From positions 1,116,001 to 1,180,000 of the forward strand of contig JBLWGC010000104.1 in the NCBI GenBank assembly GCA_048772705.1: a stretch of 64,000 bases of DNA. Direction: 5' to 3'. Of the stretch, positions 1 to 39,943 are shown one piece after another. The translations under genes and the position numbers were made by a program. Positions within the stretch are counted from its first letter, which is position 1. Each line of letters starts with the position of its first letter. The notes below the pieces were generated by a model, which was not told the origin of the DNA, did no database searches, and worked only from the letters and a program-made list of their open reading frames with translations. This DNA is from Leidyana gryllorum EB-2025a. Lineage: Eukaryota; Protista; Apicomplexa.

Positions 1-1685
1 CGCGCCTGGACTGTGGGCCAATTACGCCTGCACCAGTCACTGTAAGTCACTTCCGAAGCCAATATCTCGAAAGATTTGCCGAATTCTGGATATCCTTTCA
101 TGGTGGCCCACCTCGTTGCCTGGGCAGTTGGTGGCTGACAAACCTCAACCTCCGCCCACGAGTATTCTCGCTGACTATCGATTCGCGATTCTGGAAAGGT
201 GAAGAAAGTTTCTTCCATCCTCTGCATCAAGTCTTTCGAAACTTCAGTCTTGTGCCACGCAGATGAGGGAAGTGTGGAGAGAAGTTGCCACGCTTCTGGT
301 TGCGCCGAGCCGTCGGATGCTGAGCTATCGAATTCGAGGTGGATACTGTTGAATTGTTGTTGTACAGTTCGTGCCACGATGGTCGTCGGACCATCGCATC
401 CAATATAGCCATTGTTGATGACTGTGTTCGTCAATTTGGTGGGCGACTTGCGCTTCAACTCTTCCGGTGATCGTGGCTTTAGTAAATTGTCTCCATCGTC
501 CACTCCATCGGCAGGAATGATGTGCAGCTCCTTCTCAACATACAAATTGCCATAGTTCACGAATTTCGAGGCGATTTGAATTTGGGCGATTCCACCAAGC
601 TCTGTGCCGTCTTCGGGGTCCAGCACGATGATGTCCCCACCATCCGACACCCTTCCACCGTTCTCAAAGGAGTCGCTTATAGTCAGTAAATTGGAAGTCT
701 TTACGCGTCCGGTGTTCGTCACTTTGTGTCGAGGGCTAACCACATCAACCTCACCGCCCTCGATGAGACCACGCAGTGTGATGGGTCCCTCATCAGCGAA
801 TAAGAGCACCTTTTCCGTGGTCGCGAGTTGTCCGTTGAGATCGATCCCCTCTCGCCCCCACCCAACGATAACCAGATCAGTGCTCAACCGCAAGTCCGAA
901 TCGGCTGAGGTCCACGGGGCCTCACATTTTATGAGGACGAGACTCAGATGATTGTCGCTCGACTTCGTGGCCAGGGGTGCTAGATGGGATTCGATGTCGA
1001 CCCTCTTCGTCTTGGCGGTTGGGGACAGTTCCATATGAAGGTGCCGACGTTGGGCGTCTGAGGGGTCAGCGGTCCAGTGGTAAGTGTTACCCTGGCACAC
1101 GATAGTGAGGTCGTCCATACAGTGAACCTTCTCAAGGCCTCGAACTCCGCTTCCGCCCTCCACCTTCCAGGCACAGTGACGTCCCGTAGTGTCATGCTGC
1201 ACAAGTCGTAGTAACTCATGGACTAGCGTCGCATCCAGGGCTATCTCTTTGCTAATGCGATAAGTTATAATATCGGTATTCTCCGCTCCTCGTTCAAGTT
1301 GCATTTCTTGAATGAAGGCGACGACCGTCTTTGGATTTGTATTGAAATGGCCATTTTGTGGCTTAGTGATTCTAACAGGGAGCTCAAAATGGAAAGGAGC
1401 CCCAGCGGTCCACTCGGGGGCGACCACAGATATAGCAAGTTTCACTGTGCGAAATTGATTGCGATGCATTAAAGACGTCAGATACGCTAATTCAACGAGA
1501 TCGAGCGTCGATTTAAATTGAATGTTCATAATCCACGTGCCATCTTTACGTGTCCAGTGTGTTCCAGCAGCTGCAGCTTCCAGAAAGGAAGTGCCGCGCT
1601 TGTCATTTTTCACTTCATTTGATAGGGGTACGAGAGAAGTGAACACTTGCAACAACTCTATCAATTTAGAACCAAACATCGTCAT
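1..1685 (-). CDS. Large uncharacterised FHA-like repeat family protein, member A (5' part; runs off the left edge)
   Basis: Missing from the ORF track because it has no stop in the window. My translation from ATG 1685 (MTMFGSKLIELL...HWTRKDGTWIMNI...WKVEGGSGVRGLEKVHC...VTNTGRVKTSNLLTISDSFENG...REYSWAEVEVCQPPT...WATMKGYPEFGKSFE) is open to base 1 and collinear with 7098..10553. Confidence 0.85.
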   Translation of the reverse strand, partial: MTMFGSKLIELLQVFTSLVPLSNEVKNDKRGTSFLEAAAAGTHWTRKDGTWIMNIQFKSTLDLVELAYLTSLMHRNQFRTVKLAISVVAPEWTAGAPFHFELPVRITKPQNGHFNTNPKTVVAFIQEMQLERGAENTDIITYRISKEIALDATLVHELLRLVQHDTTGRHCAWKVEGGSGVRGLEKVHCMDDLTIVCQGNTYHWTADPSDAQRRHLHMELSPTAKTKRVDIESHLAPLATKSSDNHLSLVLIKCEAPWTSADSDLRLSTDLVIVGWGREGIDLNGQLATTEKVLLFADEGPITLRGLIEGGEVDVVSPRHKVTNTGRVKTSNLLTISDSFENGGRVSDGGDIIVLDPEDGTELGGIAQIQIASKFVNYGNLYVEKELHIIPADGVDDGDNLLKPRSPEELKRKSPTKLTNTVINNGYIGCDGPTTIVARTVQQQFNSIHLEFDSSASDGSAQPEAWQLLSTLPSSAWHKTEVSKDLMQRMEETFFTFPESRIDSQREYSWAEVEVCQPPTAQATRWATMKGYPEFGKSFEILASEVTYSDWCRRNWPTVQA

Positions 1686-2026
1686 TGAAATGGAAGATAT
1701 ACACACGCAGATCTTTTGCGCAGATGCAAATCGTTTCGGGCTGTCAGGGGCAGCGAGGTTTCGCAACGCCACAAGTAGGTGGCGAAATTTCGGAGACGTC
1801 GCCCTATTTACCTGTCTATGAAGCGGATCAGCGTTGCTTTGTAACATTATTGAGACGTTCTCTCGCGGTTCCGCACTTTGCTGCTGTGGGAAGAGGTCTG
1901 TGAAATGGGGACTCAGTGTAGCAGATCACTACATGTTTTTGATGTGCGATCGTGTCGACACACCTAGGCGTGCGGCAGATCACCCTCACTCGAGATCTTC
2001 TCGCCCTTAAAATTTGGTATACTGGG

Positions 2027-5000
2027 ATGGAGGCCAGTGAGCCGTCGTGGTACCGTGGAATACGAACAGAGAGGCGGGTTGCTCTGTGGCTATCTGAGTG
2101 TTATCCAGAGACGTTGATCACGAGACATGGTAGGGAGACTCACATTCATTTGACCTTCAGAGGTGTTGTCGATCTCACGAAACTCGGGCACTATACGTAT
2201 GTTATCAAAACGCGTAAGCCCGCATACATAACTTGTTCTATAGTTGTGACGGCAAAGAGCCTCAACTGGAAAAGCCCTACTCACTTTCATGTTAATTCAC
2301 TTGTATCCATTGAACCCGATGAGAGTAAACTACGGAGGAAGACCTGCATGAACTCGATTGAGACCCTGAGTTTGACTGGGAGTTCTACCGAAGGCGGTCA
2401 AGAGACACTGAGACTCACAACTTTCCCAGGCGCAACATTGAGTGGTCGCTTTTTGAGCCACCTCAGTCAATGGATCCAATGCCAATCCCCGTCTCCTAGT
2501 GATTGTCGCCTCGAAGTCCACGCTTACAAGATCGTTCAAATTAACTATTCCTTGTGGATACGGCCTGCGACTTTCTACTCTCTGAACGGTTTATTTGGTG
2601 AATGTGAAGTTTCTCGCATCCTCACTTTGGAGAGATCGGTATCGGTGGAAGTGTGCGGCAACACCGCAGTGACTAACTCAAGGCTGAGAACGATCATCGA
2701 GACTGTGATGAGGTATCAGGAGCCCGGAAAAGCCTCGAGCCCTATTACTGTAATTGCCGATCACTTTGCCATATCCGGCTCGAAACCCTTCAATATATCA
2801 ATCCCCCTCACTCTGATTGCCTTGGGATCAAAGGGAATCCGATTAGAGGGCACAATCAGCGTTCGTGATGCCTCTTTCGTCTGTGATGCTCTGATCGGGC
2901 CCATTGTAATTGCTGGTTCGCTCCGTGGCCAAAACATCGAGCTGCGTGCCCCAAACAACGATGTCACCAATCATGTTTCCAGTAATTTCGAAAATTCGGC
3001 AATCTGTATTGTTGCACGAACAGTGAAATCGGCGACATTACGCATCTGTGATGCCTCTTGGATCGACCCCGGGTATCGTATTCGGCAATTTCTCAATCAA
3101 TGCAAACGACAGCGATGGATGCCATACCAGGAAGGGCGCTATCGCTGGGGACTGGAGTTTCCAACAGATCTCAACTTATCGGTGCTGGGTCACCTCACCG
3201 CATGTTTGAAGGAACACCTGCAGAAGGATACCCTCTCAAAAGTCTCTATTGAGGCAACGGCTCCGTCCTGGAGCTTGAAGGGCCCGTGCCACTTTCACGT
3301 TCCAGTTGTCATCCGAAAATTGAGAGACCCCGAAAACCAATCGAGAGACTCCGAAAACCTTGTGAAGACGGATGTACTGAACATGATGGACTCCATCGAG
3401 CTGGTGGGAGCTGCAGAAGGGAACCACCAATCTCTAACGCTCCGCACGGACTCCAAAGAAGACATTGATTTAGTCGAATTGGCGAAACTGAGTCTGTGGA
3501 TTCAGTCAGAGAGCTCACCAGACTCGTGCAGTCTCGTTCTCTACGCTGCTGGAGGAAAAGGCGCCGCCTCTTGTTACTTTGCACGTGACTTTGTTCTCCA
3601 CCACAACGTTGTGACATGGAAATGGGTTGCGGCGAGAACGGGAGGCGACGAACGACACTTGTGTATCGAGTGGTCTGATCATGCGCAGCTGTTGAGGATA
3701 TCAACGTTTCTCGCCGTCGCCACGGAGCGCAGATCTGTCAACAAGATCGACAAGGTCGTCCTCAAAGCGAAATACTTTGACACGAGCGAAGAGACGAAGA
3801 CGAATCGTCAAAAGATGCATGGAGACAGTGCACTCGGAGGAGTCAACAGTGATCAGAGAAGCTTTGCCATCGACTGTGGAATCCCATTGTCTCTGATAGC
3901 GGCTGAAGCTGGCGGCATCACTCTAACTATACCGTTGAGGGTGACGGAAGTATTAGTGTGTTGTGCTAAGAAGGGGCCCATCAGACTGGAATCTCACATT
4001 CGGGCAAACTATGTGGAGCTGTTAAGTCCTACGAGTCGAGTGGTCAATATCGGTGTGTTGGCCGTCTCGCATCTGGAGGTTACTGCTCGAGTTTTCCACA
4101 ATTCGTCGCAGGACGCCCGTAATGGAACAAAAGCTAAGGGTAAACGGCCCGAAGTCATAGTTCTCGACGACGACGGAAGAGGAGTGGCCATTTTTCGCGT
4201 ACTTTCCTTCCTCAATTATGAGGGCAGCATTTACGCTAATCATTCTCTGATAATCTCCACCTCCTGCCTCGATGAAGTGGAAGATGGCCCCTATGGCATA
4301 TATATTGAGGATGAGCTTCGTGGAGCAGTGGTGAATTCGGGATACATCGCTTGTCGCGGCGAGATCGCCGTTTCTGCCAGTCGACTCGTCATGGAGTACG
4401 CGAAGATTGGAAGTGATCTGAGAAGACTGACGAGCTCTACTTGGAGAGGCGACTGGGTCAACTTGGCAGAGGCCGTTACGCCTGAACACTTTTCGGCACA
4501 ACTTAAACGGAGAATCGAACAGACCCACTTTATATTCCCCACCGAGAATGGCGACAGTGCACATTACACATGGTCAGAAGTCGGAGTGAATTTTCCTCCA
4601 ACACAAGATGCAACAGCGTGGGCAACAATTCGACGTTATCCGGAATTTGGAAAGACTTTCTCTGTTGTGGCTGATACGACCACTTGGACTGAATTCGTTG
4701 CACGCTGGCCCAGGATCGATTGGGCTGAAGAGGAGATGGCTTTGGTGGATAAAATTTCCTCAGCCTTCGCACCCAAGTGTGGCAGCGGGATGGTGCTCTC
4801 CACCGTGGAAGGCAAAGTATTCTGGGCGCGCTCCGGCACAATTGCTGGTGTGTACACCTCCACTCCTTGCCGGAAATGCACCTTCTTGAAACCTCTTCCC
4901 CGCAACGATGTCGCCTTGATCCGACAGGCCGACGACAAAGTGTTACACTCAAAGTTTGTGGAGGTTGAATATCATCATGCCGTCCCTGACTTCCGCGCAC

Positions 5001-6448
5001 TCACTCAGTCCCAGGCGCACAAACTCCTCGCAGCTCTCGATCCTTCTGAAGTCCCAATGCTGTTTGCCGGTGGTGATCTGCTTCTGGAAGTAAATAATGC
5101 AAAGATCACTGCGGGCATCATATGCTCCAAAGGGGGTCAAGTGACAGCGCCTCTCCTCAACCTCCAGAACCATATGAAGGGGCTCGATGTGACAGTTGAT
5201 ATAGAGGAAGTGGAGCGTCGTCATCAACATCGGGGGTGCACTCATCAAGTGCCGACCTTCTCGAGCTTCATGTCCTGGCTCTTTACACCGCCGCCGACGT
5301 TACGTTTCTCATCCACCAACGATCGTCACGAACGCCCAGCGAAGCCACAAATATCCCTCAACTTGGGAGACTACTTTCAGACCAAATCCGAGACGGGCCT
5401 CAGGACGGGCCTGGAAGATCGCCTGAGGATTTGTCAAAGAGTGTACGACAGAGTGATGGGTGCATCGAATGCTGGCGAGACGCCGGCCCTCAACGCTCAA
5501 GCGGAGAGGGCGTGCGAAGAATTGGACGAACGTGGCCGTCTCATGCGGACAGTGCTGCAACTCCAATTTTCCACGATCCAGAACTTGTTAAGAGTAGTCT
5601 TCGAGATCACTGTGGCCTCCCCCTCGGACTGGCCCCAAGTCCTCGACAAATTACGTTCACCACCTTCACTGCAGGACCCCCTCACTGCTTTAGGAGAGCA
5701 ACGACTGAGAAGAGTTCTCGATCGCATGAGCTCTCTCGAGAGAGACACCATGGTTGGCATAATGATCTCGTTCTTCTTGTCCTTTCCTTCACCGCACCAG
5801 GTGTGCGTCCCGAACTCTCGATGTTTCGTTGGTCTCAAACGACTGACTCTTTGCGCCCAACAACTCCGTTCGAGTTCCCGAGTGCAGAAGGAATCAAATC
5901 CTACTGCTACAGACGTCGCCCAGAACGGTTGGTGCACCTACCGTCTGAACAGTCGACTTACGATTCGACCGGAAGATTCCGATAATCAGGTGTTTGAGAT
6001 CTGGCAGCAGAACATCGCGTCGGACACTCTGGCTGACGCTTATGCATACTGCTTCAGACCTGTGCTTGAGCACCAAGGTGTACAGACTACTCTTCCGCCA
6101 CTTTGTGACGAGAAGTTGAAGCCTCTTCCACGACCCAGAGGCTTACATCCAGATCTGCGAGAGAGTGAGATCGGAGCGTCAACTGGGAACACCGAGGTGG
6201 GAACAAAGTACACTATCCCCCCGCAAGTGAAAGATGCAACACGGCGGTGTATTAAAGCTGTTGGTGCCTACTTGGCTTCGGCACTCCTTTGTTTCCTCGG
6301 CGTAGAAGCGCCGGGTGCAGCGGCCGCTATCAAATTGGCTTCTGGCCGCGATCCCGCCAAAGCGGGAGGCGACCTCCTTTGGTTCATTTGTCGAACCGCT
6401 CTCAGCATCTGGCGGTCTGACTTGGCTGAGCAGTTCGATTCAGCGTGA
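2027..6448 (+). CDS. Large uncharacterised FHA-like repeat family protein, member B (about 1473 aa, duplicated N-terminal module)
   Basis: Single intronless ORF (open from 1952, first ATG 2027). Shares YTWSEV, WATIRRYPEFGKTF, TPCRKC, YHHAVPD, CFVGL and AYC.PV blocks with 7098..10553. Confidence 0.88.
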   Translation: MEASEPSWYRGIRTERRVALWLSECYPETLITRHGRETHIHLTFRGVVDLTKLGHYTYVIKTRKPAYITCSIVVTAKSLNWKSPTHFHVNSLVSIEPDESKLRRKTCMNSIETLSLTGSSTEGGQETLRLTTFPGATLSGRFLSHLSQWIQCQSPSPSDCRLEVHAYKIVQINYSLWIRPATFYSLNGLFGECEVSRILTLERSVSVEVCGNTAVTNSRLRTIIETVMRYQEPGKASSPITVIADHFAISGSKPFNISIPLTLIALGSKGIRLEGTISVRDASFVCDALIGPIVIAGSLRGQNIELRAPNNDVTNHVSSNFENSAICIVARTVKSATLRICDASWIDPGYRIRQFLNQCKRQRWMPYQEGRYRWGLEFPTDLNLSVLGHLTACLKEHLQKDTLSKVSIEATAPSWSLKGPCHFHVPVVIRKLRDPENQSRDSENLVKTDVLNMMDSIELVGAAEGNHQSLTLRTDSKEDIDLVELAKLSLWIQSESSPDSCSLVLYAAGGKGAASCYFARDFVLHHNVVTWKWVAARTGGDERHLCIEWSDHAQLLRISTFLAVATERRSVNKIDKVVLKAKYFDTSEETKTNRQKMHGDSALGGVNSDQRSFAIDCGIPLSLIAAEAGGITLTIPLRVTEVLVCCAKKGPIRLESHIRANYVELLSPTSRVVNIGVLAVSHLEVTARVFHNSSQDARNGTKAKGKRPEVIVLDDDGRGVAIFRVLSFLNYEGSIYANHSLIISTSCLDEVEDGPYGIYIEDELRGAVVNSGYIACRGEIAVSASRLVMEYAKIGSDLRRLTSSTWRGDWVNLAEAVTPEHFSAQLKRRIEQTHFIFPTENGDSAHYTWSEVGVNFPPTQDATAWATIRRYPEFGKTFSVVADTTTWTEFVARWPRIDWAEEEMALVDKISSAFAPKCGSGMVLSTVEGKVFWARSGTIAGVYTSTPCRKCTFLKPLPRNDVALIRQADDKVLHSKFVEVEYHHAVPDFRALTQSQAHKLLAALDPSEVPMLFAGGDLLLEVNNAKITAGIICSKGGQVTAPLLNLQNHMKGLDVTVDIEEVERRHQHRGCTHQVPTFSSFMSWLFTPPPTLRFSSTNDRHERPAKPQISLNLGDYFQTKSETGLRTGLEDRLRICQRVYDRVMGASNAGETPALNAQAERACEELDERGRLMRTVLQLQFSTIQNLLRVVFEITVASPSDWPQVLDKLRSPPSLQDPLTALGEQRLRRVLDRMSSLERDTMVGIMISFFLSFPSPHQVCVPNSRCFVGLKRLTLCAQQLRSSSRVQKESNPTATDVAQNGWCTYRLNSRLTIRPEDSDNQVFEIWQQNIASDTLADAYAYCFRPVLEHQGVQTTLPPLCDEKLKPLPRPRGLHPDLRESEIGASTGNTEVGTKYTIPPQVKDATRRCIKAVGAYLASALLCFLGVEAPGAAAAIKLASGRDPAKAGGDLLWFICRTALSIWRSDLAEQFDSA

Positions 6449-6531
6449 AAGATTGTCACCTGGGAACTCCCGCTGCCGCGATCGATGACATAAAATGTCA
6501 CGAATGTTTGATCCAAAAATCAGACTCGTGG

Positions 6532-6939
6532 ATGCTGGAGGGAGAAGGGGAAGAGTTGATGAGTGGGCTGAGACCACCGGTAGTCCACCGCCCAGACACC
6601 GGGCTTCGAGCTCCTTTCTACTCAGTCTGTCCGGAGACGGGCTTGCATTGGCGTCAAACATCACGCAGTCTTCTAAACTGTATCGCTCCGAGCTGCGCTC
6701 ACCGAAACCGCCGCTTCCTACTGGATAGAATGTCTCTTTCCAGTCCAAAGACGGCATTCCTATCGATGACGGGATGTCTCGATGTCTTCGATATGAGCTA
6801 CATTGATTGGGATAGAGATGTTAGGGACAGACTCTATCTCACCGCCAACTACAGAATCCCCACTGTGGCCCGTGAGGACTCTCTCGCAGATCCATCATTG
6901 TACATATTTGGTTCCAAGGCATTTGAGTACAGAGAATGA
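6532..6939 (+). CDS. Hypothetical protein (about 135 aa, Cys/His-containing)
   Basis: Only ORF filling the gap between members B and C; no recognisable family. Confidence 0.3.
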   Translation: MLEGEGEELMSGLRPPVVHRPDTGLRAPFYSVCPETGLHWRQTSRSLLNCIAPSCAHRNRRFLLDRMSLSSPKTAFLSMTGCLDVFDMSYIDWDRDVRDRLYLTANYRIPTVAREDSLADPSLYIFGSKAFEYRE

Positions 6940-7097
6940 CGAAGGGGGGACATAGCAAAATAAACTTTGTTCAGTGGCATTCTCACTCCCTCCCGATGGG
7001 GGGTATTCACATCAGCAGGGACTCGATCACTCTCCGCCCAATTTCTGCCCCAATCATATTACTCATTCGCTCCGGCTGAGTTTTGCTCTCCTCGAGC

Positions 7098-10000
7098 TCA
7101 TCTGGGGTGAAACCTTTGCCTTCCCATAGATTCACAACATTTTTGCACAAGATGGCGACGATCATGGCCTGAGTCAAGTACCCTCCACACGGCAGAAGCG
7201 GTGGCTGGGCATTTCTTGCAGACAGTTTTCGCAAGCTGTAGTGTCACCGCCATGAGAACGCCACGCTCCAAACACAGCGACACTCGGGCCCAATCAATGC
7301 CGTCTTGGCTATCGGTGGGGGCCGTTTCGCTCATGAAACCACGCTGTTTACGAGTTGGAGAGACTTTCTCGTGACGCTCGGTGGGACGATCGAGAAGCGC
7401 CCGCTGGCCTGCTCTCGGACTCGACTTCTTGTGAAACCGTCTGTCAGTGACCACGGGATTGTAGCAGTAAGCGAAAGAATCACTGAAAGTCTGATACTCC
7501 TGGTTGTGTTGCCATATTCTGATCACCTCGGCGGCTGCATCCTCTGCGCGAATTTTGATTTCATACTGATAGCGCTGTAAGACCCAATGGAGAGATGTAT
7601 CGAGATCTCGAGGTTGAAGCGACTCATTGATCTCGCAAACTTGTCGGAGTCCTACGAAGCATACAGTGTTTGCTTCGCAGTATAGAGTGGGATCAGTGGA
7701 GTCCAAGAAGTATCTTTTCAGAATGAGCTCCACGGCGACTCTCTCCTCAAAGCTGAGGGACTCCAGCCAGATTCGAAGTCGTTCATCCTCAGACGTCTCG
7801 ACGGCATCGTTGAGTGTTCTGACGCGCAGACGCTTCTTCCATTCATTATCCAAATCCCATGTGATGTTATAGACGGCGTGTAAGAGTGGTGGCAACAGGT
7901 TCGTTTCCAACTGGTCCAAGGTCCACTCCAATTGCTCGATACCACACTCCCCATTGTTGATGGTCTCCACTGCTGTCGACGACGAGGACTCCTGGATCAT
8001 CTTAGAAGCCAGAGCCTGATAGAGGTCAACCATGTCCTGCAACAAAGTTCTCCGTGCCGCATCGGGCCCCCGCAAAAAGACCTCTCCAAATACGACAGAA
8101 ATACGTGACGCTGAGTCCGTACCATTATGCCCGCGTCCCTCCTCCTTGGCCCGTCCTCGAGCCCTTGAGTTGACCACGTATCTATAGCCTGCTTGTGCCC
8201 CTTTGATAACGAAGGGCGCAGCCATGACTACTGCCGCGGTTGGGGCACTCCCCAGCAATAGAACCGTGCTGGTGGCAGCCATGGCAACAGGTGTGAGGAA
8301 CCTTGTAGGATTTCGGGAATGAGGGCATACGGGATGTTCTTTCTCGAGGCACATCTCGATTACGGGCACTTTGATCGTTGCACGCTCGGTGAGACCCTCT
8401 TGTGTGCTAGATCGTGTATAGGGATAGGTGATACGTGTGTTGGACCACACAATACCAGCAACAATTTGGGCTTTTTCCACCGTCAGGGTCAATACACCTC
8501 CCGTGAAGATAGATGGAACGCGTGTGTGACGAAGTTGTTCTCGACGGAGCCGTTCCATCGCCTTTTTGGATGCACATCGAAGGTCGGGTATCGAATGGTG
8601 ATACGCCCGCTCGATAACCTTGGAGTACGGGCGTGGAGTCCCGCCGTACGCCTCTCTCTCTATACGTGGCCACATGAAGCGGCACTGACGGCAAGGTGTG
8701 TTCTCAAAGGTATCAATCAAACTCGTAGACACCCAGAAGCGTTTGCCCGACTCTGTTTGCAGGACCGACCCTGCACCAGAGGGTTGAGGCTGATTTTGCT
8801 CCAAATAAGAAGTCACAGTGCTGTCTCCGCGTCCGAGCGCGAATCTCTGACCCTCACCGCAATCAAACTTCCCCCTGTCGCTCCAAATCACTTTTGACCC
8901 CACAACCTCAAAGGACTGGCCGAGCTCAGGGAATCCTTTCAGCGTGGCCCATTTTTTCGCCTCCGGTGTCGGTGGTCGGCAAATCTCCACCTCCGACCAC
9001 GAGTACTCGCGCTCACTGTCGATCGGCGACTCAGGAAACTTGAAAAAGGTTTCCCTTCCCATCTGCGACAGCCATTTGGGGAGGTCACACCCGTCCAACG
9101 CAGATGAAGGAACTGTAGACAACAATTGCCACTCCATATCTCCAACCTCATAGTCCTCCATGTCGTCGATATCGAGGTCGATGCTCTCGAACCGTTGCTC
9201 CAGATCCTTAGCGATGATCAGGGTGGGGCCATCGCAAGCAATGTTCCCCATGTTGGTGACGGAGTTCCGCAAATTAACAGGTGATGTTGACGTCAAGGAT
9301 CGCAGAGATCGGTGTCTCGTCAGTCCTTCTGCCTCTGAAATGTCTCCAAGAGGAACGATCTGCAGCGTTCTCTGTGCGTAGATATTCTTGTAGTTTCGGA
9401 AGCTCGTGGCGACCTGAATTTGGGCGCATCCACCGGCTTGTTTGCCGTCTCCCTGGTCGAAAACGAGGATGTCGCCTCCATTGTTGTCCAGTCTCGTGTC
9501 TTCGCCATTTTCGAAGCAGTCTGCTATTATCAGCAGTTTAGAAGCCTTCAGTCGTCCCATATTACGCACTTTGTATTCCGGACTTATCAGGCCAACGTCT
9601 AACCCTGTGAGAGAACCAGTCACCACAATGGGTCCTTCCTTGGCGAGCAACATTACATTCCCAGTCGTCGTCATATCTCCGTTGAGACCAATCCCTTCAG
9701 ATCCGCTTCCAATTACGATGAGATCGAAATTCACCTCCAACTTGGTGCCTCCATCAGTCCACGGCAGGGAGCATTGAATGGTCACCAGCTTCACGCGATT
9801 GATGTCCCGACTCTTGGCAATGGGGGCCAGATGGTGTTGCAAATCTGTTCGCATATCTTGGGAATATCTGTCGAGTTCGATACTGAGATGTCGACATCGA
9901 GCGTCTGAGGGGTCAGCAGTCCAGTGGAATGTCTCTCCCTGACACACGATGGTAAGATCGTCCGTACAGTGAACCTTCTCAAAGCCTCGAACTCCGCTTC

Positions 10001-10553
10001 CGCCCTCCACCTTCCACGAACAGCGACGTCCCGCGGAGTCATGCTGCAGAAGCCGTAGTAACTCTCCAATTACTGCCGCATTCGCTGAAAAATCATCATA
10101 AAGGCGATAAGTGATAATGTCGGTGTCCTCGGGCCCCCGTTCTAACTGAATTTCTTCAACGACGTCGGATGTGTTCTCTGACTCCACTTTGAGAGGCCCA
10201 TTTGGGGGCTTTCTGATCCGGAATGGAAGCTCGAATTTGAGCGAAGTACCAAACTTCCATTGGGACGCCAATACAGATACCATAACATTCACGTTGGGAG
10301 AGAGATGTCGACTTATCACTGCCGTCAGATACGCCAAGTCGGCAAGGTCGAGGAACTTTACTGATTCGATCTCCATTGTCCATGTACCATCTTCGTGCGT
10401 CCACTTCGGCGCAGCAGCCGCGGCGCCCAGGAAGGCACTGCAGCGTTCGTCATCTCTCACTGCGCGTTTCACGAGTCGCAGGTTACTCCAGACTCTCCAC
10501 CAGCCCACAAGTGTCCGCCACAACTCGACCACCGCCCAGAAGAGGCCCACCAT
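7098..10553 (-). CDS. Large uncharacterised FHA-like repeat family protein, member C (1151 aa)
   Basis: Intronless ORF and full-length paralogue of A and B, with N-x-G-x-[IL]-x-A type rungs (VRNMGRLKASKLLIIA, FRNYKNIYAQRTLQI, VTNMGNIACDGPTLIIA). Confidence 0.9.
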   Translation of the reverse strand: MVGLFWAVVELWRTLVGWWRVWSNLRLVKRAVRDDERCSAFLGAAAAAPKWTHEDGTWTMEIESVKFLDLADLAYLTAVISRHLSPNVNVMVSVLASQWKFGTSLKFELPFRIRKPPNGPLKVESENTSDVVEEIQLERGPEDTDIITYRLYDDFSANAAVIGELLRLLQHDSAGRRCSWKVEGGSGVRGFEKVHCTDDLTIVCQGETFHWTADPSDARCRHLSIELDRYSQDMRTDLQHHLAPIAKSRDINRVKLVTIQCSLPWTDGGTKLEVNFDLIVIGSGSEGIGLNGDMTTTGNVMLLAKEGPIVVTGSLTGLDVGLISPEYKVRNMGRLKASKLLIIADCFENGEDTRLDNNGGDILVFDQGDGKQAGGCAQIQVATSFRNYKNIYAQRTLQIVPLGDISEAEGLTRHRSLRSLTSTSPVNLRNSVTNMGNIACDGPTLIIAKDLEQRFESIDLDIDDMEDYEVGDMEWQLLSTVPSSALDGCDLPKWLSQMGRETFFKFPESPIDSEREYSWSEVEICRPPTPEAKKWATLKGFPELGQSFEVVGSKVIWSDRGKFDCGEGQRFALGRGDSTVTSYLEQNQPQPSGAGSVLQTESGKRFWVSTSLIDTFENTPCRQCRFMWPRIEREAYGGTPRPYSKVIERAYHHSIPDLRCASKKAMERLRREQLRHTRVPSIFTGGVLTLTVEKAQIVAGIVWSNTRITYPYTRSSTQEGLTERATIKVPVIEMCLEKEHPVCPHSRNPTRFLTPVAMAATSTVLLLGSAPTAAVVMAAPFVIKGAQAGYRYVVNSRARGRAKEEGRGHNGTDSASRISVVFGEVFLRGPDAARRTLLQDMVDLYQALASKMIQESSSSTAVETINNGECGIEQLEWTLDQLETNLLPPLLHAVYNITWDLDNEWKKRLRVRTLNDAVETSEDERLRIWLESLSFEERVAVELILKRYFLDSTDPTLYCEANTVCFVGLRQVCEINESLQPRDLDTSLHWVLQRYQYEIKIRAEDAAAEVIRIWQHNQEYQTFSDSFAYCYNPVVTDRRFHKKSSPRAGQRALLDRPTERHEKVSPTRKQRGFMSETAPTDSQDGIDWARVSLCLERGVLMAVTLQLAKTVCKKCPATASAVWRVLDSGHDRRHLVQKCCESMGRQRFHPR

Positions 10554-10607
10554 GATACAATGGAAAAAGTTTTAAAACTGGATCTCGATCAGGGGGATGG
10601 GTACAAT

Positions 10608-11190
10608 ATGATTTTTGTTGTCGCTAGTCTCATCTTCGCCCCAGCAGACAGCATCAGCACCAGCCAGGGACGCAAAAGTTTAAACCTTACAGATCCGGAT
10701 GGAGGCCTCCGTTGACGGGATCCATCGTCTGGTTACGAAACATGCACTGAATGTGGAAATGAGTTACAATCTGGATGCTCCGTACGTGTCTCGCCTCTGG
10801 ATACATCTCCGAATGCCACCATCCGAGTGACTGTGCCATCAGTGCAGTGACGAGGTGGTAGAAAATGGAAGGTGGGTAATTAGCCTCGCAACAGACTTGA
10901 TCCCCGCTCAGGGGTGCCTAGCGTTGGGTCCCAGCGGCACCGAGATCCGTACACAGGGAGGAGACAGAAGAGAGACGACGGCTCCACACAAAGTACCACG
11001 AGCCCTCCACCGAGCAGTTGTACAACAGTTTCGGGTCCCATGGAATTCGCTATCTGCCAGGTGGACGGACACCTGCCGAGTGGAGAAGAGCGGATGGACT
11101 CCACATCCGCACAGCAGTGTGAGCGAGAGAGACGCCGTTCTATGTTCTCCAAGCGCTTTCCCCGGAGACGAAAGTAGGAGGAGGAGCTGA
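10608..11190 (+). pseudogene. Possible decayed relic of the same family
   Basis: Stop-interrupted fragments ENGRWVISLATDL (cf. EGRYRWGLEFPTDL) and ATIRVTVPSVQ*RG (cf. SVRITAPSLSWTG). The similarity is weak and judged by eye. Confidence 0.2.
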
Positions 11191-12154
11191 GTCCATCGAG
11201 AAGCATCGTGGGTAAGATCAAGCAGAACCCATGTGCACTAATTGTGGCCGCGACAGTAGACACAGGACGTATATGGCAACGACGGCATAACTCCCACCAC
11301 ACACCACTTCAAAAACGAGTCGCATTTCCGTCAATGTCACATTCGACTCGGATATATATGAAACTCGACTAAGAGAGTAGGAACACTCCTGTAGCTGGAG
11401 GAGACATGAGAAAACACAACAGAGGCCTCGGCAATCGCTACGAACTAAGAGTCGGCGCGACCGTCATAAGAGAAGAACGCCTTTCGAGTTCGAGACGGAT
11501 ACATCACCTCAACCAAAGGCGCTCAGATATAACTCAGACAACCACTTACCGTTGGTAGAACAAATGTCGCCCAAAAGATGGAGTGTGCTCCTCAGCCGAC
11601 TGTTTCTCCGCGCCACCTCAGCCTCCAGCGCACCTTGTGGAGTGATAATTCGCCAGTGTACTGTCGAGCACAAGGCTCCAAAGAAATTGTATTATTACTT
11701 AATGGTCGCTCACTGCACCATCTAGTAAAAGGCGAGATGGTGATAAGCGCTGAGCAGCCACATGACATATCAGAAGTTTTTAAAGTTCATTGAGGGGAAT
11801 GTTCTGTCTCCAAAACCCGATGTCCCACTATCCGTCTTGGAAGAGGGCGTGTGACTGTTTTCTCGCACCCGTTGAGTGATTGTCTCGGCATTTAATAGCA
11901 ACTACAAACACACACGCTTTGTCACCAACCGCTTGTTGAACACTGAGTGTGATGGACTTATCTGCTCAGCCTGCAGCGGGGAGAATGGACACCACATCAC
12001 GATCCCTGCAGTCTCTTTTAATAAAGTCGGTGGCTTTGAGATTGTTGAGTGGCCTCTGCAAATGGTTGTCACACTCGTAATCAACAGTAATTGAGCTGCT
12101 TTGAAAGTCAGTCGTGCGCCCATTTCAGGATTCATTGAGTCATAATGTTCTAAT

Positions 12155-13030
12155 TCATATGAGTATCACTCCAAGACTGGGGGGATCACAGATAATTGAG
12201 TCATTTTCAGTAACACGAAGGAAACTTGTGGTCTGAGGGCAAACCAGCCGCAGGCGTATATCGGCAGAGAGGATACTAGCAACCGCCTTCACCTCCTCTT
12301 CATGGGTGTCATTGGGGGATCGCTGTAGAAATTGGGAATGGATCGTAATCTCCCTCAAACGCTTGTGTTTATCGTAGTTACACACCTTGTCACTGCCAAA
12401 GTGGGCACGAAGCGCCGAAAGAGGCACTCTCTGAGTGCCGTCAATGGGTCTCAATGCTGCGGTTCTATTGTGAATGTTGACCGAGCAGCTGAGAACCCAT
12501 GTTGGTCCGTCTAACTCACATACAAGGAACGCTGCGTACGGATAGAACAAGGTGAGCTCGTGTAAGAGCGCTCGTAGAGACGTCACGGCCCCTTCGTTCA
12601 GCTCAGTGCATGGGAAGGTTCGGATCGCCAGCTCCGCTCTCGTCTTATCAGGAACCCTTGCTGATGACACTTCTCTAACGGCATTGAGGAGGTAATGGGT
12701 AGGATCAGCCATCTCAGTGATAATGACGTCGGTGGGGACATAAAAATAGACTCTCCCAGTCCAGCTCAATGATGGGGCGGTGATTCTCACCGAGACTTCG
12801 ATCCCTTTTGGCGCGAATTCTGCCACCAGCCGTGTGTAACGCTGCACTTCATCGAAGACGATTTGCTTCGCGAGGAACCATTGAATTAGTTGATGTTTAC
12901 TATCATTTTGAGTCCAGTGAGAATGGGTCGCAGAGCTCGCGAAGCCTGTTGCCTCCAGCACCTTTTCTTTTTTGTGCCAGTCCGGCAGCAGCAACTCGTC
13001 ACACGAGTTGACTGGAACATCGCTCACCAT
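12155..13030 (-). CDS. Short family member D: stand-alone N-terminal module
   Basis: VSVRITAPSLSWTGRVYFYVP...NAVREV...LAIRTFP matches the module motifs VSIEATAPSWSLKGPCHFHVP and SIVVTAKSLNWKSPTHFHV...LRLTTFP. Confidence 0.65.
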   Translation of the reverse strand: MVSDVPVNSCDELLLPDWHKKEKVLEATGFASSATHSHWTQNDSKHQLIQWFLAKQIVFDEVQRYTRLVAEFAPKGIEVSVRITAPSLSWTGRVYFYVPTDVIITEMADPTHYLLNAVREVSSARVPDKTRAELAIRTFPCTELNEGAVTSLRALLHELTLFYPYAAFLVCELDGPTWVLSCSVNIHNRTAALRPIDGTQRVPLSALRAHFGSDKVCNYDKHKRLREITIHSQFLQRSPNDTHEEEVKAVASILSADIRLRLVCPQTTSFLRVTENDSIICDPPSLGVILI

Positions 13031-13288
13031 TGCAGATCTCAAAAGTACTCAGTTCTGCCATGGAGAGGAAAGACATATCCACAACGTTCGTCTTGCAGCG
13101 ACACTCACTCACTCACTCACACATACGGTCGATTATTCCGGATCGAGGGCGTATGAAGGTCGCACATCATGTTGCTCAGATTGCCCCCGTTGGAGGCGAC
13201 AAGTTGGTGTCCGTCCAGGATCTCATTGGTGCTTTATCGGTAGTTAGCTACAGAGGTACGCAAAACACACGATCAATAGGACTTTTGG

Positions 13289-13590
13289 CTATGCAACTTT
13301 GGTAGCTTGAATGAACTTGACAGCCTTGTTGGAAGCCTCCGCCCACGGCTTGAGCGCACTGTCGATAGCGTCGGCCGAGAATGTGTCTGCCGGCGTATAT
13401 GTCTTAATGACCACGCGTTGGGCGGGCACGTCGCAAGCCACTTCGGTAACTCCTTCCACCTTCTTCAGAATACGCGTGACGGCTAAGACCATTGTGTGTG
13501 AGAGTCTCAATCTCAATATTCGTGGTTACCATTTGCACAGCCATCACAAGACATCTCGACCGAATAGGTATATGTGCCAGTTACCCCCAT
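13289..13590 (-). CDS. ATX1: Copper chaperone, ATX1/ATOX1 family (HMA domain), 1 intron
   Basis: Spliced product YTYSVEMSCDGCAN|AVTRILKKVEGV with the MxCxxC motif and a gtaacc...cttag intron. Confidence 0.88.
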
Positions 13591-13661
13591 GGGCTGCTGA
13601 ATGAGCTGAGTGCCATCTGGATTGACAGCTACGGGCGGCGACATTTGGTGTAAAAGTTTTC

Positions 13662-14027
13662 TTAGGAGATGGTGAGGAAGGAAATGAGGTGAAAAGTCCT
13701 CCCAGGTGTGGCGCTCCACACTTGAAAAACTTCCCGGATCAGTCTCCTCGCTCCATCGGCTCCCTCGATTGAGTTTGTTGTCCTGACCTCAACCTTTTCT
13801 TTGTCATCATCCACTATAAGATCTCCAAATCCTGGTATGCCCGACAGTAGGGTGTGGAGGTCTGCTCGAAGACGATAGCTGGTATATGGCGGATGTATTC
13901 TCTGCTTACCAGCAATGTCCCTATCGGAGCTAATTTGGATGGTGAACGAAAAAGAGTTACAGAGATCGGTCTCAGCATCCCGGCCCTCGACGGATGTGAG
14001 AAAAGAGCAACAAGGCCTGCTCTCCAT
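13662..14027 (-). CDS. Degenerate HMA/ATX1-like protein lacking MxCxxC
   Basis: LHTLLSGIPGFGDLIVDDDKEKVEVRT...IREVFQVWSATPGRTFHLIS aligns with ATX1 VTRILKKVEGVTEVACDVPAQRVVIKT...IDSALKPWAEASNKAVKFIQ. Confidence 0.5.
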   Translation of the reverse strand: MESRPCCSFLTSVEGRDAETDLCNSFSFTIQISSDRDIAGKQRIHPPYTSYRLRADLHTLLSGIPGFGDLIVDDDKEKVEVRTTNSIEGADGARRLIREVFQVWSATPGRTFHLISFLTIS

Positions 14028-14038
14028 TCAAGAATTTA

Positions 14039-16537
14039 TCAGAACTGCCCCCTCCAGTTGAAAGTATTCGACCGAACCCAGTTTTGGAAAGTCAGATTCC
14101 GGGTTTGACCTTCAGACCATCTCTCTTGGTGTCCCAACGCCTCAATAACCGGCTGGACGACCTCGTTGAAAAGTTCTGGGTCATAATCGCAACAGCTCGC
14201 CCACGGGTAACCAGGGCATAGTGATGAGTCTTCGGGGAGCGCCGCGTTGGCTATCCACCGGTGCAGCACAGCACAATCCTCTTGTTTTCCATCAGCCCCG
14301 GATGATTCCAAACAATCCCCATACGCTCTCGTAATATCAAAATGGCCTTTGAGGTATACCGAAAGATCCGTCCACTCTGTCACACACCACACAAATGGCA
14401 CCACCGGATGGGGAGGAGGTGACGCTGATCCCACAAACCCAACATAAGGATGAGACGCTGGACACATTGTTTGCTGTCCTGTCAACAGCTTTGCTCTGCT
14501 ACATCGCTCCAAATGCCATATGGGGGTAATACGCTCTGGGTACTCTTGGCTTTCAAGCTGTTGTAATCGCACTTGTGTAGGGATCAATTCGAACTTGCGT
14601 AGATTCTCCCGCAGTTGACTCACAAATCGCAGTTTGCTCCGATCATCTTTTATCGCCGTTAATTCAATCACATTCCAGTCCATTCGCCCCTCACTATTCG
14701 CCAGCTTCCCGTACTTGCTTTCACCCGCTCTCCACCGATGCTCCTTGAGAATTCGGGACTCCAGACTCCGGAACATGTGGTGGTCCAATCTCAATTCTGT
14801 CAGTACACTCACGGAACGAGTTGGTGCCAATGTCTTATGAGCACAGTGGTGAATCCACGGTTGGCCACACTCCACAGCAAAGCCTTTGTGGTCAACAGAC
14901 CACTCCGGATCGAAAACTGCTCTTGGAACACGACGATGCTGACTACCACTCTCCCCCTCCATCAACGCCGAATTCAGCTCCCGTGACTTCGCCGGATACG
15001 CTTGCCCCTGCAGTAGCCCGCCCAATTCTGTCTTCAACCCAACTGAGAAAGACGCAGGCGGGTCAAACCGCCTTCCCGTCCAGATGATACTCTTCCCGAC
15101 GTTTGTCACTTGACTGGGCAAATTCCCCGGCACACAAACGGCAGCCGGCGGAGTTCCCAGCTGCTTCAGCCGTTTCGCCGTGTTCACCTTCTCGCGAAGA
15201 GGAGCGTTCGAAGGCTTCAGAAGTTCGTCCACATAAGCTTTGCAAATAGGATACAGATCGACCACTGTAGCTGCCAACTCGGCGTAAGAATCACCGTAAT
15301 CCAGCGAAGACATCCGCTTGGTTTGAGACTCTATCACCAGAGGAAAACCTTCGGCTGTGGCCTGCCACACCCAATCAGTCAATCGTTTTTCTCCCTCGTA
15401 CTCCAGATCCCTTGCATACTTCCGCAGCTCACTCCAGTCCTCTTCCGTCAACTTCGCGTCAACAGATCCCTCCTGAACCCGCGACGGATCGTACTTCTCC
15501 AAGAAGGACTTGAACCATTCGCGGCGTGCCTCCACCGACATCTGAGGGAGACTGTCGGCAGTCTCCTTGAGCCATGGCAGAATCGAGCTGAGGTCGGTGT
15601 CTTTGTTACCGAACCGCGGGTCATATAAGACCTCGACTTCCCCACGGGCCGCCGATGGAACGAGTGCCACCTTGTTCTCAAACGGATTACCGTTCGCCAG
15701 CCCGAAATTAACCGGCCATACGTATAATGCCGACAAGTTACCATACTGATATGCCAGGGTCGTCGAGGTTCTGTCAATCTCCCCCGTGGAGGGTCTTATG
15801 GGTGGATCTCCGTACAGAGACAGAAAATAGTCTGTGAGGGTGTCGTGCGAGGGTGAGTAAAGGAACTCGTCAATATCCACAAGAGCTAGCCACTCGGTCT
15901 TCGCCTCATAGCGAGCAAAGCAATGTTTCAAGATACTCTGCTGAGCCAATCTATGCATTTGCATACTTGCGAACGGCGCCTTTGTTCGATTCAGAAACGT
16001 GTTTGCTCCTTCGCCGAACACAGCTTGAGCTGAATATATATCAATCAGTTCCGTCAAACCCAACTTCTCCTCGTAGAGCCTCGGAAACCAGTATAGCTGA
16101 TTGGAATGTATCCGTCTGTCGCCTTCCACGGGCATGTCATCAGCGTACAATACGAACTTGGTGACCCCTTGGATACGATGGAACTCCAGCCACTCCAACA
16201 GATACGGGCTCTCATTACCCACTTTCGCACATATTGTGATCCGGTGATCCACACCATAGGGATTGTGTGTCCAAGCAGACTGCTCCCCGATTGACGCTGA
16301 TTGCCAAGTCTCGGATGAACTGGAGATAAGATCCAGATGCTCATGACCTGGATCACTTGGTTTATGGATCGCCAGTATGTCAATGTCACTCCCCGTCAAA
16401 GGAGTGGGGGGAGGGAAGTTCCAAACCGCAATGGAACAACATGCCACAATTAACCATAGTGTTGAAAGGCCAAATATAATGTAGACGAGGAGACGAATAT
16501 CGACCCTATTTATGATGGTGGGACGGGAGTGCGGCAT
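14039..16537 (-). CDS. Type II membrane glycosyltransferase, GT92/GT2-like
   Basis: N-terminal TM anchor; ICAKVGNESPYLLEWLEFHRIQGVTKFVLY and EWLALVDIDEFLY (DxD) motifs; Cys-rich C-terminus. Confidence 0.8.
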   Translation of the reverse strand: MPHSRPTIINRVDIRLLVYIIFGLSTLWLIVACCSIAVWNFPPPTPLTGSDIDILAIHKPSDPGHEHLDLISSSSETWQSASIGEQSAWTHNPYGVDHRITICAKVGNESPYLLEWLEFHRIQGVTKFVLYADDMPVEGDRRIHSNQLYWFPRLYEEKLGLTELIDIYSAQAVFGEGANTFLNRTKAPFASMQMHRLAQQSILKHCFARYEAKTEWLALVDIDEFLYSPSHDTLTDYFLSLYGDPPIRPSTGEIDRTSTTLAYQYGNLSALYVWPVNFGLANGNPFENKVALVPSAARGEVEVLYDPRFGNKDTDLSSILPWLKETADSLPQMSVEARREWFKSFLEKYDPSRVQEGSVDAKLTEEDWSELRKYARDLEYEGEKRLTDWVWQATAEGFPLVIESQTKRMSSLDYGDSYAELAATVVDLYPICKAYVDELLKPSNAPLREKVNTAKRLKQLGTPPAAVCVPGNLPSQVTNVGKSIIWTGRRFDPPASFSVGLKTELGGLLQGQAYPAKSRELNSALMEGESGSQHRRVPRAVFDPEWSVDHKGFAVECGQPWIHHCAHKTLAPTRSVSVLTELRLDHHMFRSLESRILKEHRWRAGESKYGKLANSEGRMDWNVIELTAIKDDRSKLRFVSQLRENLRKFELIPTQVRLQQLESQEYPERITPIWHLERCSRAKLLTGQQTMCPASHPYVGFVGSASPPPHPVVPFVWCVTEWTDLSVYLKGHFDITRAYGDCLESSGADGKQEDCAVLHRWIANAALPEDSSLCPGYPWASCCDYDPELFNEVVQPVIEALGHQERWSEGQTRNLTFQNWVRSNTFNWRGQF

Positions 16538-38843: not shown

Positions 38844-39938
38844 CTATCTTTTGACCCAGATAGCCTTGAGACATTCGGCAATTTCATCGATGGGAACAGA
38901 TGTGGGGGAGTCAGGTTCGAGCAACGATTCCAGCGACGTCGTTGTGACGGGTCGTTGTCTGTGCCACACCATAGCTATTCTTCGACGATATTTGAGCGGC
39001 AGGCCGATGGACTTGAGCATCGGTTTGACGTCCGTTGACTCTTCGAACCGCCGCAGCCATTGACGTTGTGAGTTGACCGGCATGTACTGCCCACTAACAA
39101 TCGGCCACGTGAAGGCTGCATAGATAAAGACCGATTTCATCTCTGTGGTCCAGCTGGATTTGCTGTTGATTTGAGCAACGATCGCCTCGAGCCATGTAGA
39201 TACGTTGAAGCGGAAGGGGACGAATGAGGCATATCTCGGGAAAAGAACTTCAAATAGGCCTGAATCTGTGAGTGACGAGTAGAACGTTTTTGGATTTGGT
39301 GCTGATAGCCATAAGTCAGTGACCGCGTCAAAGAGTGGCTGCGGCTCAATTTTACTTATCAGGTGGGCGTGATTGCGGATAGCCATCAGATCAGTAGCTG
39401 AGATATGTAGCTTTAGTCTATTCGCTATCCGTATGGCTCTGAGTAATCTGACAGGCTCGATGTTGTATGTGACGTTTGCAGGGTTGACAGTGGCTAGTCG
39501 GCGTTCCTGTATGTCAGCGAAGGCTCTTGGCAGTCCGGTAACCGTGTGCTTGACGTTGTCATAGTACAATGAGTTGATGGTAAAGTCTCGCCGCATAACA
39601 TCTTGTTCAATGGATTTGCCATAGAGATTTCGATCGCCAAAGACGTTGGAAGGTTGACGTAGCGTTGCAATATCTATAGGCGCACCAGTAGTCCGCACGA
39701 CAACAACTTTAAAGGCAGTTCCGGCCACACAGGTTCGATCGGGGAAGAGTGCGACAATTTGATCAGGGGTAGCATCAGTAGCGATATCAAAGTCCTTAGG
39801 TACTTCGTTGAGTAAAAAGTCGCGGATACACCCGCCAACGAGCCAGGCGGAGTATCTGGCGTTCCGCAGAGTGGTCAGTACGCTTCGCACTTCTTCGGGA
39901 ATGCGTTCCTGGTCTAAGACTAGTCGTCGGGTTTCCAT
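38844..39938 (-). CDS. PcnB-like class II nucleotidyltransferase, copy 1
   Basis: LVGGCIRD...PKDFDIAT, RRDFTINSLYYD, EPVRLLRAIR, FIYAAFTWP; intronless. Confidence 0.9.
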   Translation of the reverse strand: METRRLVLDQERIPEEVRSVLTTLRNARYSAWLVGGCIRDFLLNEVPKDFDIATDATPDQIVALFPDRTCVAGTAFKVVVVRTTGAPIDIATLRQPSNVFGDRNLYGKSIEQDVMRRDFTINSLYYDNVKHTVTGLPRAFADIQERRLATVNPANVTYNIEPVRLLRAIRIANRLKLHISATDLMAIRNHAHLISKIEPQPLFDAVTDLWLSAPNPKTFYSSLTDSGLFEVLFPRYASFVPFRFNVSTWLEAIVAQINSKSSWTTEMKSVFIYAAFTWPIVSGQYMPVNSQRQWLRRFEESTDVKPMLKSIGLPLKYRRRIAMVWHRQRPVTTTSLESLLEPDSPTSVPIDEIAECLKAIWVKR

Positions 39939-39943
39939 TGAAG

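Follow-up and report, generated by a model that had tools for sequence, protein, structure and literature searches.

Right-handed parallel beta-helices with narrow rungs and asparagine corners are formed by the TpsA secretion (TPS) domains and the FHA-type regions of two-partner secretion passengers such as HxuA (PDB accession no. 4i84 and 4rt6), HMW1 (2odl), EtpA (8cpk and 8vba), and FhaB (1rwr). Among animals, the teneurins are proteins derived from bacterial Rhs/YD polymorphic toxins. A eukaryotic beta-helix is found in the A-domains of Awp1 and Awp3 from Candida glabrata (7o9q and 7o9p), GPI-linked proteins of the wall that have a leader and are secreted, and whose published structural neighbors include HxuA (PMC8746771), and the Tox-GHH domain is listed in metazoa (PMC3482391). 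We found no published FHA/TpsA-type beta-helix in a eukaryote, and the literature searched for apicomplexans gave none.

Here, we analyze a gene cluster at the beginning of a 64,000-nucleotide stretch of DNA (the window) from Leidyana gryllorum, in which an earlier note had seen a family of large proteins with TpsA-like beta-helix rungs. As judged from sequence comparisons and structure models, the family is new and gregarine specific (lineage restricted), with a predicted FHA-type beta-helix set in a new architecture.

The gene cluster and its genomic setting

Three long, uninterrupted open reading frames (ORFs) make up the cluster. Member A lies at positions 1 to 1685 on the minus strand, where its N-terminal 561 aa cover the N-module, the beta-helix, and the start of the insert; its gene extends past the left window edge to contig position 1114299 (G000:C104:1114299) and encodes ~1194 aa at full length (L002:1306-4887:-). 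Both member B (2027 to 6448, plus strand), with 1473 aa counted from the ATG of the earlier note, and member C (7098 to 10553, minus strand), with 1151 aa, were delimited by ORF call and family comparison, and C is the reference for both structure models. A is 47 to 48% identical to C in pairwise alignment, and B is 27 to 29% identical to C. A further ORF of 295 aa (12155 to 13042, minus strand) matched the family profile with an E value of 2.5e-6 within the window, at profile positions 51 to 178 only; by this match it is a distant stand-alone N-module and no full paralogue. Thus, while all ORF positions put forward in the earlier note were confirmed, its count of at least four intronless paralogues stands for A, B, and C as long uninterrupted ORFs and falls short for the fourth, which is a remote N-module only. 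Dead family copies were also considered for the stretch from 10600 to 12150, where the family profile matched none of the six-frame pieces of at least 30 aa.

Five full-length members are present in the genome: A, B, and C inside the window; D, which lies on the same contig but 140 kb upstream; and E, found on contig C208. At least 13 shorter genes (contigs C140 and C204) have only the N-module and the first rungs in common with them. Family members diverge considerably (18 to 50% identity). No relatives outside this genome were found in a word-indexed protein collection that includes a Gregarina transcriptome, whether member C or a 19-sequence alignment served as the query. Likewise, the family profile gave only a chance match among PDB sequences (E = 0.65), ESM Atlas feature searches with the whole protein and with residues 820 to 1060 returned no usable match, and an ESM Atlas shape search reached TM values of at most 0.35, too low to be informative.

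Eukaryotic genes identified in the window include eIF3a, PP2C, and SET. Together with the best match of the PP2C, which falls on a Gregarina sp. transcriptome by a wide margin (47% identity), these neighbors support a gregarine context, in agreement with the apicomplexan source proposed from the sequence. The companion claim that housekeeping genes are intron rich held for the one gene that was spot-checked, eIF3a, which is divided between two adjacent ORFs. The composition of the family is native, with a GC3 of 0.55 to 0.57 that is similar to that of the adjoining genes. That the family members are real, native gregarine genes forms part of the overall explanation given below, which we regard as probable.

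Protein architecture and predicted fold

In the models, an alpha/beta N-module of ~150 aa at the beginning of each protein caps a right-handed parallel beta-helix of ~8 to 10 rungs, each of ~18 to 20 residues and with asparagines at the corners. The sequences show that this helix is broken by a conserved excursion of ~225 aa, with an invariant CxxC...CxH set, after which come one or two more rungs, a hydrophobic hairpin in some members, and a conserved helical region of ~330 to 400 aa.

In member C (all on the minus strand), the N-module comprises residues 40 to 190 (9984 to 10436; pLDDT mostly 81 to 93), and the beta-helix, assigned from the predicted model and the alignment, comprises residues ~191 to 456 (9186 to 9983). 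The insert at residues 457 to 679 (8517 to 9185; ~223 aa by alignment, pLDDT below 50) shows the strongest conservation between distant members and contains the invariant C621-x2-C624. Measured from the last N-terminal rung to the (A/T)GG-x-L-x-L rung it spans ~228 aa, close to the ~230 aa noted earlier. The rungs after it (residues 680 to 704, IFTGGVLTLTVEKAQIVAGIV; 8442 to 8516), located by string match and model, fall within the part of the whole-protein model that aligns with TpsA structures, with a pLDDT of only 52 to 62. Next comes an HPVCPH motif (8319 to 8336) with C743 and H745 invariant in the alignment, which together with C621 and C624 might form a metal site. A hydrophobic segment at residues 752 to 785 (8199 to 8300) is shared by A, C, and E but missing in B and D. 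The C-terminal helical region (residues 820 to 1151; 7101 to 8096) is conserved among the paralogues and matched no family or fold.

Member B (plus strand) differs in that its N-module is duplicated (residues about 1 to 362 and 350 to 650). Its rung region extends over residues 610 to 840 (3854 to 4546), with individual rungs at 4040 to 4102, 4208 to 4255, and 4328 to 4387, and a post-insert rung, LFAGGDLLLEVNNAKITAGII, was located by string match at 5060 to 5122. Every motif string quoted in the earlier note was recovered, at residues 672 to 692, 728 to 743, 768 to 787, and 1012 to 1032 of B and at residues 682 to 702 of C. The late hydrophobic Ala/Gly-rich segments that it described are present as well, in B as a tail-anchor-like stretch detected by hydropathy (residues 1408 to 1437; 6248 to 6337) and in A, C, and E beyond the Cys/His site.

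AlphaFold modeled residues 40 to 470 of member C with five concordant models (pLDDT 84.8, pTM 0.84) as a right-handed parallel beta-helix with rungs of ~18 to 20 residues and with the alpha/beta N-module as its cap; the model of the whole protein is confident only at residues 250 to 450, and model confidence is low for the insert, the rungs that follow it, and the C-terminal half. Both predictions derive from shallow alignments, of 5 and 19 sequences, all from one genome. Invariant asparagines (N331, N349, N387, and N434, the last within N434-x-G436) sit at strand ends and are 18 residues apart where no loop intervenes. The six best PDB matches are all TpsA secretion domains, with Z scores of 15.2 to 20.0 over the two models, a resemblance to be read with the caveat that AlphaFold may favor the nearest beta-helix class that it has already seen. 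HxuA (4i84) leads with a Z score of 18.5 to 20.0 and an rmsd of 2.0 to 2.2 over 184 to 199 residues, ahead of HMW1 (2odl, Z 17.1 to 19.3), EtpA (8cpk, Z 16.3 to 18.1), and FHA (1rwr, Z 15.2 to 15.8). Generic beta-helices rank next at Z scores of 13.9 to 14.7 or less, and left-handed helices align only at an rmsd of ~12. For the model of residues 40 to 470 taken by itself, the six TpsA matches score 15.2 to 18.5 and generic beta-helices 13.9 at most. The top Foldseek probabilities were 0.99 for HxuA and 0.57 for FHA; with the low-confidence whole-protein model of C as the query, Foldseek returned noise. The guess of a TpsA-like beta-helix made from the letters alone is thus well matched by the prediction for the rung region, modeled at high confidence as a right-handed parallel beta-helix with TpsA proteins as the nearest solved structures. 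A helix of this kind was predicted and profile searches assigned the proteins to no known widespread eukaryotic family, the two points on which the earlier note had staked its proposal.

Sequence comparisons with TpsA, FHA, and CdiA families

At the sequence level, Pfam gave no match for the whole proteins at E ≤ 1 or for the rung regions at E ≤ 10, and NCBIfam gave none. Specifically, PF05860, PF05594, PF13332, and TIGR01731 did not match A to E, all of which lack the NPNL and NPNG(I/M) motifs. The VENN motif is absent, and Pfam detected no toxin domain. Conservation of the C-terminal region (16 to 49% identity across members) is similar to that of the other regions, so this is not a variable, CdiA-style swapped toxin cassette. 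A TpsB partner gene was not found among the Pfam-annotated ORFs of the window. Genome scans with PF05860 and with the TpsB transporter model PF03865 gave no match, as did the same scans of control genomes. What the family does display are FHA-repeat-style rungs (18-residue spacing where no loop intervenes) in which alternating hydrophobic residues come after an N-x-G corner (N434-x-G436), and its predicted models show a TPS-type right-handed parallel beta-helix.

The sole non-self profile match among 1.84 billion proteins was an FHA protein from Chromobacterium piscinae, WP_347788414.1 (P0001; ESPR, TPS, Fil_haemagg, and deaminase toxin), which hit the rung region with an E value of 1.1e-9. 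Its 164-aa super-repeat aligns with family profile positions 300 to 476, including the N-x-G and IYAQ-like rung features. However, the significance of this match is inflated, because the E value adds up seven copies that are 84 to 88% identical and score 10 to 15 bits each, the best of them 15.4 bits with an i-Evalue of 250 and a bias of 44. A profile-profile comparison (hhalign) gave a probability of 20%, a reverse search of the genome with a super-repeat profile found nothing, and the TPS region of the same protein showed no similarity to the family (hhalign probability of 0.8%). The match thus illustrates how a repeat-inflated E value can mimic proof of transfer. Taken together, the family is predicted to be an FHA-type beta-solenoid in fold and is no TpsA member by any sequence criterion.

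Elsewhere in the genome, an ORF on contig C7 (C7:413-1756), with remote matches on C33 and C133, scores above the cutoffs of two curated FHA-repeat models, PF05594 and TIGR01731. A PF05594 scan of the genome matched only loci on C7 and C205, which are unrelated to the family, and no sequence link between the C7 ORF and the family was found.

Membrane features and the origin of the family

None of 18 members has a signal peptide according to a hydropathy heuristic applied to ORF starts as read from the DNA, where an upstream spliced exon is possible. By the same heuristic, B, D, and E have no leader-like hydrophobic stretch within their first 45 residues, and A and C have only weak ones there. 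Among the shorter N-module paralogues, two start with MGNA[AV]T, which resembles a myristoylation signal, one has a C-terminal tail anchor, and some have coiled coils. Such features, which belong to the shorter paralogues and not to A to E, suggest a position on the cytoplasmic side of a membrane rather than secretion as an adhesin or toxin. Combined with the missing signal peptides, they make it most likely that the family, unlike a bacterial adhesin, is not exported but lies at the cytoplasmic face of the pellicle or another membrane system, such as that of an organelle. There, the beta-helix would act as a rigid binding scaffold, tethered to the membrane by hydrophobic helices. We therefore think it probable, taking the explanation as a whole, that the genes constitute a native gregarine multigene family with a TpsA-type narrow beta-helix, serving as a membrane-tethered scaffold on the cytoplasmic face.

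Two other explanations have to be weighed against this one. It is tempting to speculate that a bacterial TpsA/FHA (or CdiA) passenger gene was captured and shed its leader along with the TPS motifs. Fusion with a parasite N-module and a helical membrane region, and duplication thereafter, would have given the surface adhesin or effector that the earlier note proposed. TpsA proteins are indeed the closest structures by 1 to 5 Z units, the only outside profile match is an FHA/TPS protein and falls exactly on the rung region, the family ORFs are long and uninterrupted while the nearby eIF3a is split, and the C7 ORF indicates that FHA-type repeats exist in this genome. Yet that ORF is not linked to the family, the Chromobacterium match dissolves into its near-identical repeats, curated TPS and Fil_haemagg models give no match, the proteins have neither the TPS motifs nor a signal peptide, and the composition is fully native. 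Moreover, the yeast beta-helix adhesins also neighbor HxuA structurally, and no transfer has been claimed for them (PMC8746771). We consider the capture of such an adhesin/toxin scaffold rather unlikely. The fold may have been inherited from a bacterial gene or may have arisen independently.

Alternatively, the proteins may be home-grown beta-solenoid adhesins for host-gut attachment or parasite pairing, exported via an unannotated upstream signal-peptide exon or by a nonclassical route. Both bacteria and yeast repeatedly use beta-helix rods as adhesin scaffolds, and the family is fast diverging and occurs in clusters. Two related clusters are located no more than ~40 kb from the ends of contigs, a common position for parasite surface families, and in A, C, and E a transmembrane anchor could be provided by the hydrophobic segment that follows the helix. 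However, the complete lack of N-terminal leaders, the cytosolic-type features of the N-module relatives, and the missing central hydrophobic segment in B and D render this explanation quite improbable.

Comparison with known systems

Returning to the membrane-tethered scaffold that we favor, the likeness to TpsA lies in the modeled fold, with Z scores of 15 to 20 and an rmsd of 2.0 to 3.7 over 173 to 235 residues at 12 to 18% identity in two independent models. In contrast to TpsA proteins, the family has a eukaryotic host, no Sec/ESPR leader, and only ~10 rungs in place of repeats that run for hundreds of residues. It also has an additional N-module, its helix is interrupted by a 225-aa Cys/His insert, and its C-terminal half is helical. 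The Awp1 and Awp3 A-domains match the C model at Z scores of 10.9 to 12.8, below those of TpsA, and have no sequence relation to the family.

Teneurins offer a conceptual precedent, in which a bacterial toxin-delivery scaffold was kept as a eukaryotic membrane protein. The link between teneurins and Rhs proteins, however, rests on significant sequence similarity, whereas that between the gregarine family and TpsA comes without it. If the fold was inherited, the family would add a new instance in which a eukaryote domesticated a bacterial delivery scaffold, and if it arose independently, the family would cleanly illustrate how evolution can converge on the same narrow solenoid. Were capture true, it would be the protist counterpart of the Rhs-to-teneurin transition and, with the C7 gene, would show that an early-branching apicomplexan has drawn on bacterial adhesin scaffolds more than once. 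Gregarine biology, for its part, gains a testable candidate family for membrane-associated scaffolding or attachment.

Family members and their genomic setting

Six-frame searches of the 15.5-Mb assembly to which the window (G000:C104:1116001-1180000) belongs yielded five full-length members of the family, namely members A, B, and C in the window, member D upstream on the same contig (C104:976319-979633), and member E on another (C208:277-280 kb). All four window ORFs named in the earlier note were found, and every peptide string that it quoted was located where it had been placed. Member A enters the window with its first 561 codons (window 1-1685, minus strand) and runs on leftwards past the window edge, to a complete length of about 1194 aa (L002:1306-4887:-). 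Member C (window 7098-10553, minus strand; 1151 aa) is 47-48% identical to A and 27-29% identical to member B (window 2027-6448, plus strand; 1473 aa). A 208-nt patch is 82% identical between A (window 1027-1234) and C (window 9874-10081), well above the overall A/C divergence, and could reflect either gene conversion or strong constraint on a segment at the junction of the helix with the N-module, the alpha/beta domain heading each protein. The match of the fourth ORF (window 12155-13042, minus strand; 295 aa) to the family profile is confined to positions 51-178 (E 2.5e-6 within the window), so this ORF represents a remote stand-alone N-module.

The N-module, with one or two initial rungs (turns of the beta-helix) attached, also heads at least 13 shorter ORFs in two clusters, C140:307-345 kb (307000-345000; contig of 346 kb) and C204:167-171 kb (167000-171500; contig of 176 kb), each within about 40 kb of a contig end; in member B, the module is present in two copies. 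The short N-module genes often continue with a partial second module and a coiled coil, the latter in several of them. Two short members begin with a myristoylation-like MGNA[AV]T, and one carries a hydrophobic tail anchor at its C-terminal end.

GC content per codon position in the family genes equals that of neighboring genes. The window also holds genes for eIF3a, PP2C, SET, and the CCA-adding enzyme. The PP2C is much closer to a protein from a Gregarina sp. transcriptome (47% identity, E 7e-79) than to its next matches (at most 39%), which makes the host, on this sequence comparison, a gregarine. The eIF3a gene (window 46254-48666, minus strand) is spread over two adjoining ORFs separated by about 10 nt (47909/47920), a gap that could represent a frame change or a very short intron; the family genes, in contrast, have no interruption. 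Adjoining the cluster is an uninterrupted 832-aa ORF (window 14039-16537, minus strand) that combines a hydrophobic anchor at the N terminus with a glycosyltransferase family 92 domain. Three neighboring ORFs (window 38844-42629, minus strand), each with a poly(A) polymerase/CCA-adding head or RNA-binding domains, are either tandem duplicates or pieces of one split gene, and a bacterial-type iron-sulfur L-serine dehydratase, comprising the alpha chain and the end of the beta chain, lies on this eukaryotic contig at window 59619-60698 (plus strand).

A predicted beta-helix closest to TpsA structures

All family alignments were built from this one genome. When member C was modeled whole from the five-member alignment, the mean pLDDT was 46.6, with residues 250-450 at 74-89; for residues 40-470, modeled from a 19-sequence alignment, it was 84.8 (pTM 0.84), and all five models were concordant. 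The predicted structure comprises an alpha/beta module (residues 40-190) and an all-beta region whose successive strands would end in invariant asparagines 331, 349, 387, and 434, spaced by 18 residues where no loop is present. Exhaustive comparison of both member C models with 48,161 PDB representatives placed entries of TpsA, the passengers of two-partner secretion, in the first six positions for each model: HxuA (4i84; Z 20.0 and 18.5, rmsd 2.0-2.2 over 199 and 184 residues), HMW1 (2odl; Z 19.3 and 17.1), HxuA again (4rt6; Z 18.4 and 17.2), EtpA (8cpk, Z 18.1 and 16.3; 8vba, Z 15.9 and 15.4), and FHA (1rwr; Z 15.8 and 15.2). Autotransporters, lyases, and tailspikes came next (Z at most 14.7/13.9), and left-handed helices aligned only at an rmsd of about 12. 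Foldseek matches were weak (E about 0.02), yet their highest probabilities were to HxuA and FHA. A parallel beta-helix, which the earlier note had guessed and whose absence it had named as refuting, was therefore what the modeling returned, and a family core of TpsA-like character is supported by these predictions.

In the whole-protein model, the TpsA-aligned span, known from its first and last aligned residues only, extends from about residue 222 to about residue 730. Because the FTGG-x-L-x-L strands that follow the insert, an excursion of about 225 aa between rungs, fall within this span (pLDDT there only 52-62), they may rejoin the beta-helix. Between distant members, conservation is highest in the insert (23-31% identity versus 18-26% for the helix). 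A possible metal site would combine an invariant CxxC from the insert with a CxH, likewise invariant, that lies directly behind the last rungs. Beyond this site, A, C, and E carry a 35-40-residue hydrophobic stretch that is missing from B and D; a late hydrophobic segment of B lies 36 residues before the end of the protein.

Sequence searches and TpsA membership

Neither Pfam (at E≤1 for whole proteins and E≤10 for the rung regions) nor NCBIfam held a match for the family, word-indexed searches of 5.8 billion proteins returned no relatives, and a PDB sequence search gave a chance match only (E 0.65). The single match in an exhaustive profile search of 1.84 billion representatives was WP_347788414.1, a 4353-aa hemagglutinin repeat-containing protein of Chromobacterium piscinae with ESPR, TPS, 21 Fil_haemagg repeats, and a deaminase toxin, aligned over the rung region (profile positions 300-476). 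This is exactly the kind of protein expected from the FHA-type sequence link proposed earlier, but the statistics do not hold: seven tandem 164-aa super-repeats, mutually 84-88% identical, score 9.5-15.4 bits apiece with individual E-values of 250-15000, and the total is 53 bits with a bias of 44. Because these statistics fail and three further tests were weak or empty (20% probability in a profile-profile comparison of the family with the super-repeat, no match in the genome for a profile of the super-repeat in the reverse search, and no similarity of the family to the TPS region of this protein), the sequence case for TpsA homology is suggestive at most.

Assignment to TpsA was also considered and rejected. 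The family has no TPS domain or repeat-model match, no NPNL or NPNG motif, no VENN boundary and, since its C-terminal region is as conserved as the rest of the protein, no variable C-terminal cassette. A hydropathy check found leader-like N termini neither in B, D, and E nor in the short members, and only weakly hydrophobic N termini in A and C. Despite its TpsA-looking core, the family should thus not be classed as TpsA.

Separately, a 448-aa ORF (C7:413-1756, minus strand) at the very start of an ORF-poor 58-kb contig of native GC clears the cutoffs of two curated FHA-repeat models, PF05594 (26.1 bits, cutoff 21.5) and TIGR01731 (32.5 bits, cutoff 18). Fragments of it occur on three further contigs (C71, C215, and C62), and C33, C133, and C208 contain remote matches. 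The ORF may thus be a true gregarine gene with FHA-type repeats; no sequence link between it and the window family was detected.

Possible role and origin

On the predicted models and the sequence, the proteins are FHA-type solenoids that an N-terminal module caps and an internal excursion interrupts, and the solenoid might act as a rigid scaffold for interactions that the hydrophobic helices would tether to a membrane. A location at the cytoplasmic face of a membrane system seems to us more likely than export, because a leader is missing from every member and the shorter paralogues resemble cytosolic, membrane-attached coiled-coil proteins. Origin as a captured bacterial passenger that now serves as an adhesin or effector, as the earlier note proposed, appears unlikely to us, and a home-grown secreted adhesin still more so. 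Regarding capture, the available text of a polymorphic toxin survey lists toxin and immunity domains that reached eukaryotes and does not name filamentous-hemagglutinin repeats themselves among the transfers (PMC3482391). The precedent of the yeast Awp adhesins urges caution in inferring transfer from fold, as HxuA is a structural neighbor of these adhesins (PMC8746771) just as it is of the gregarine models.
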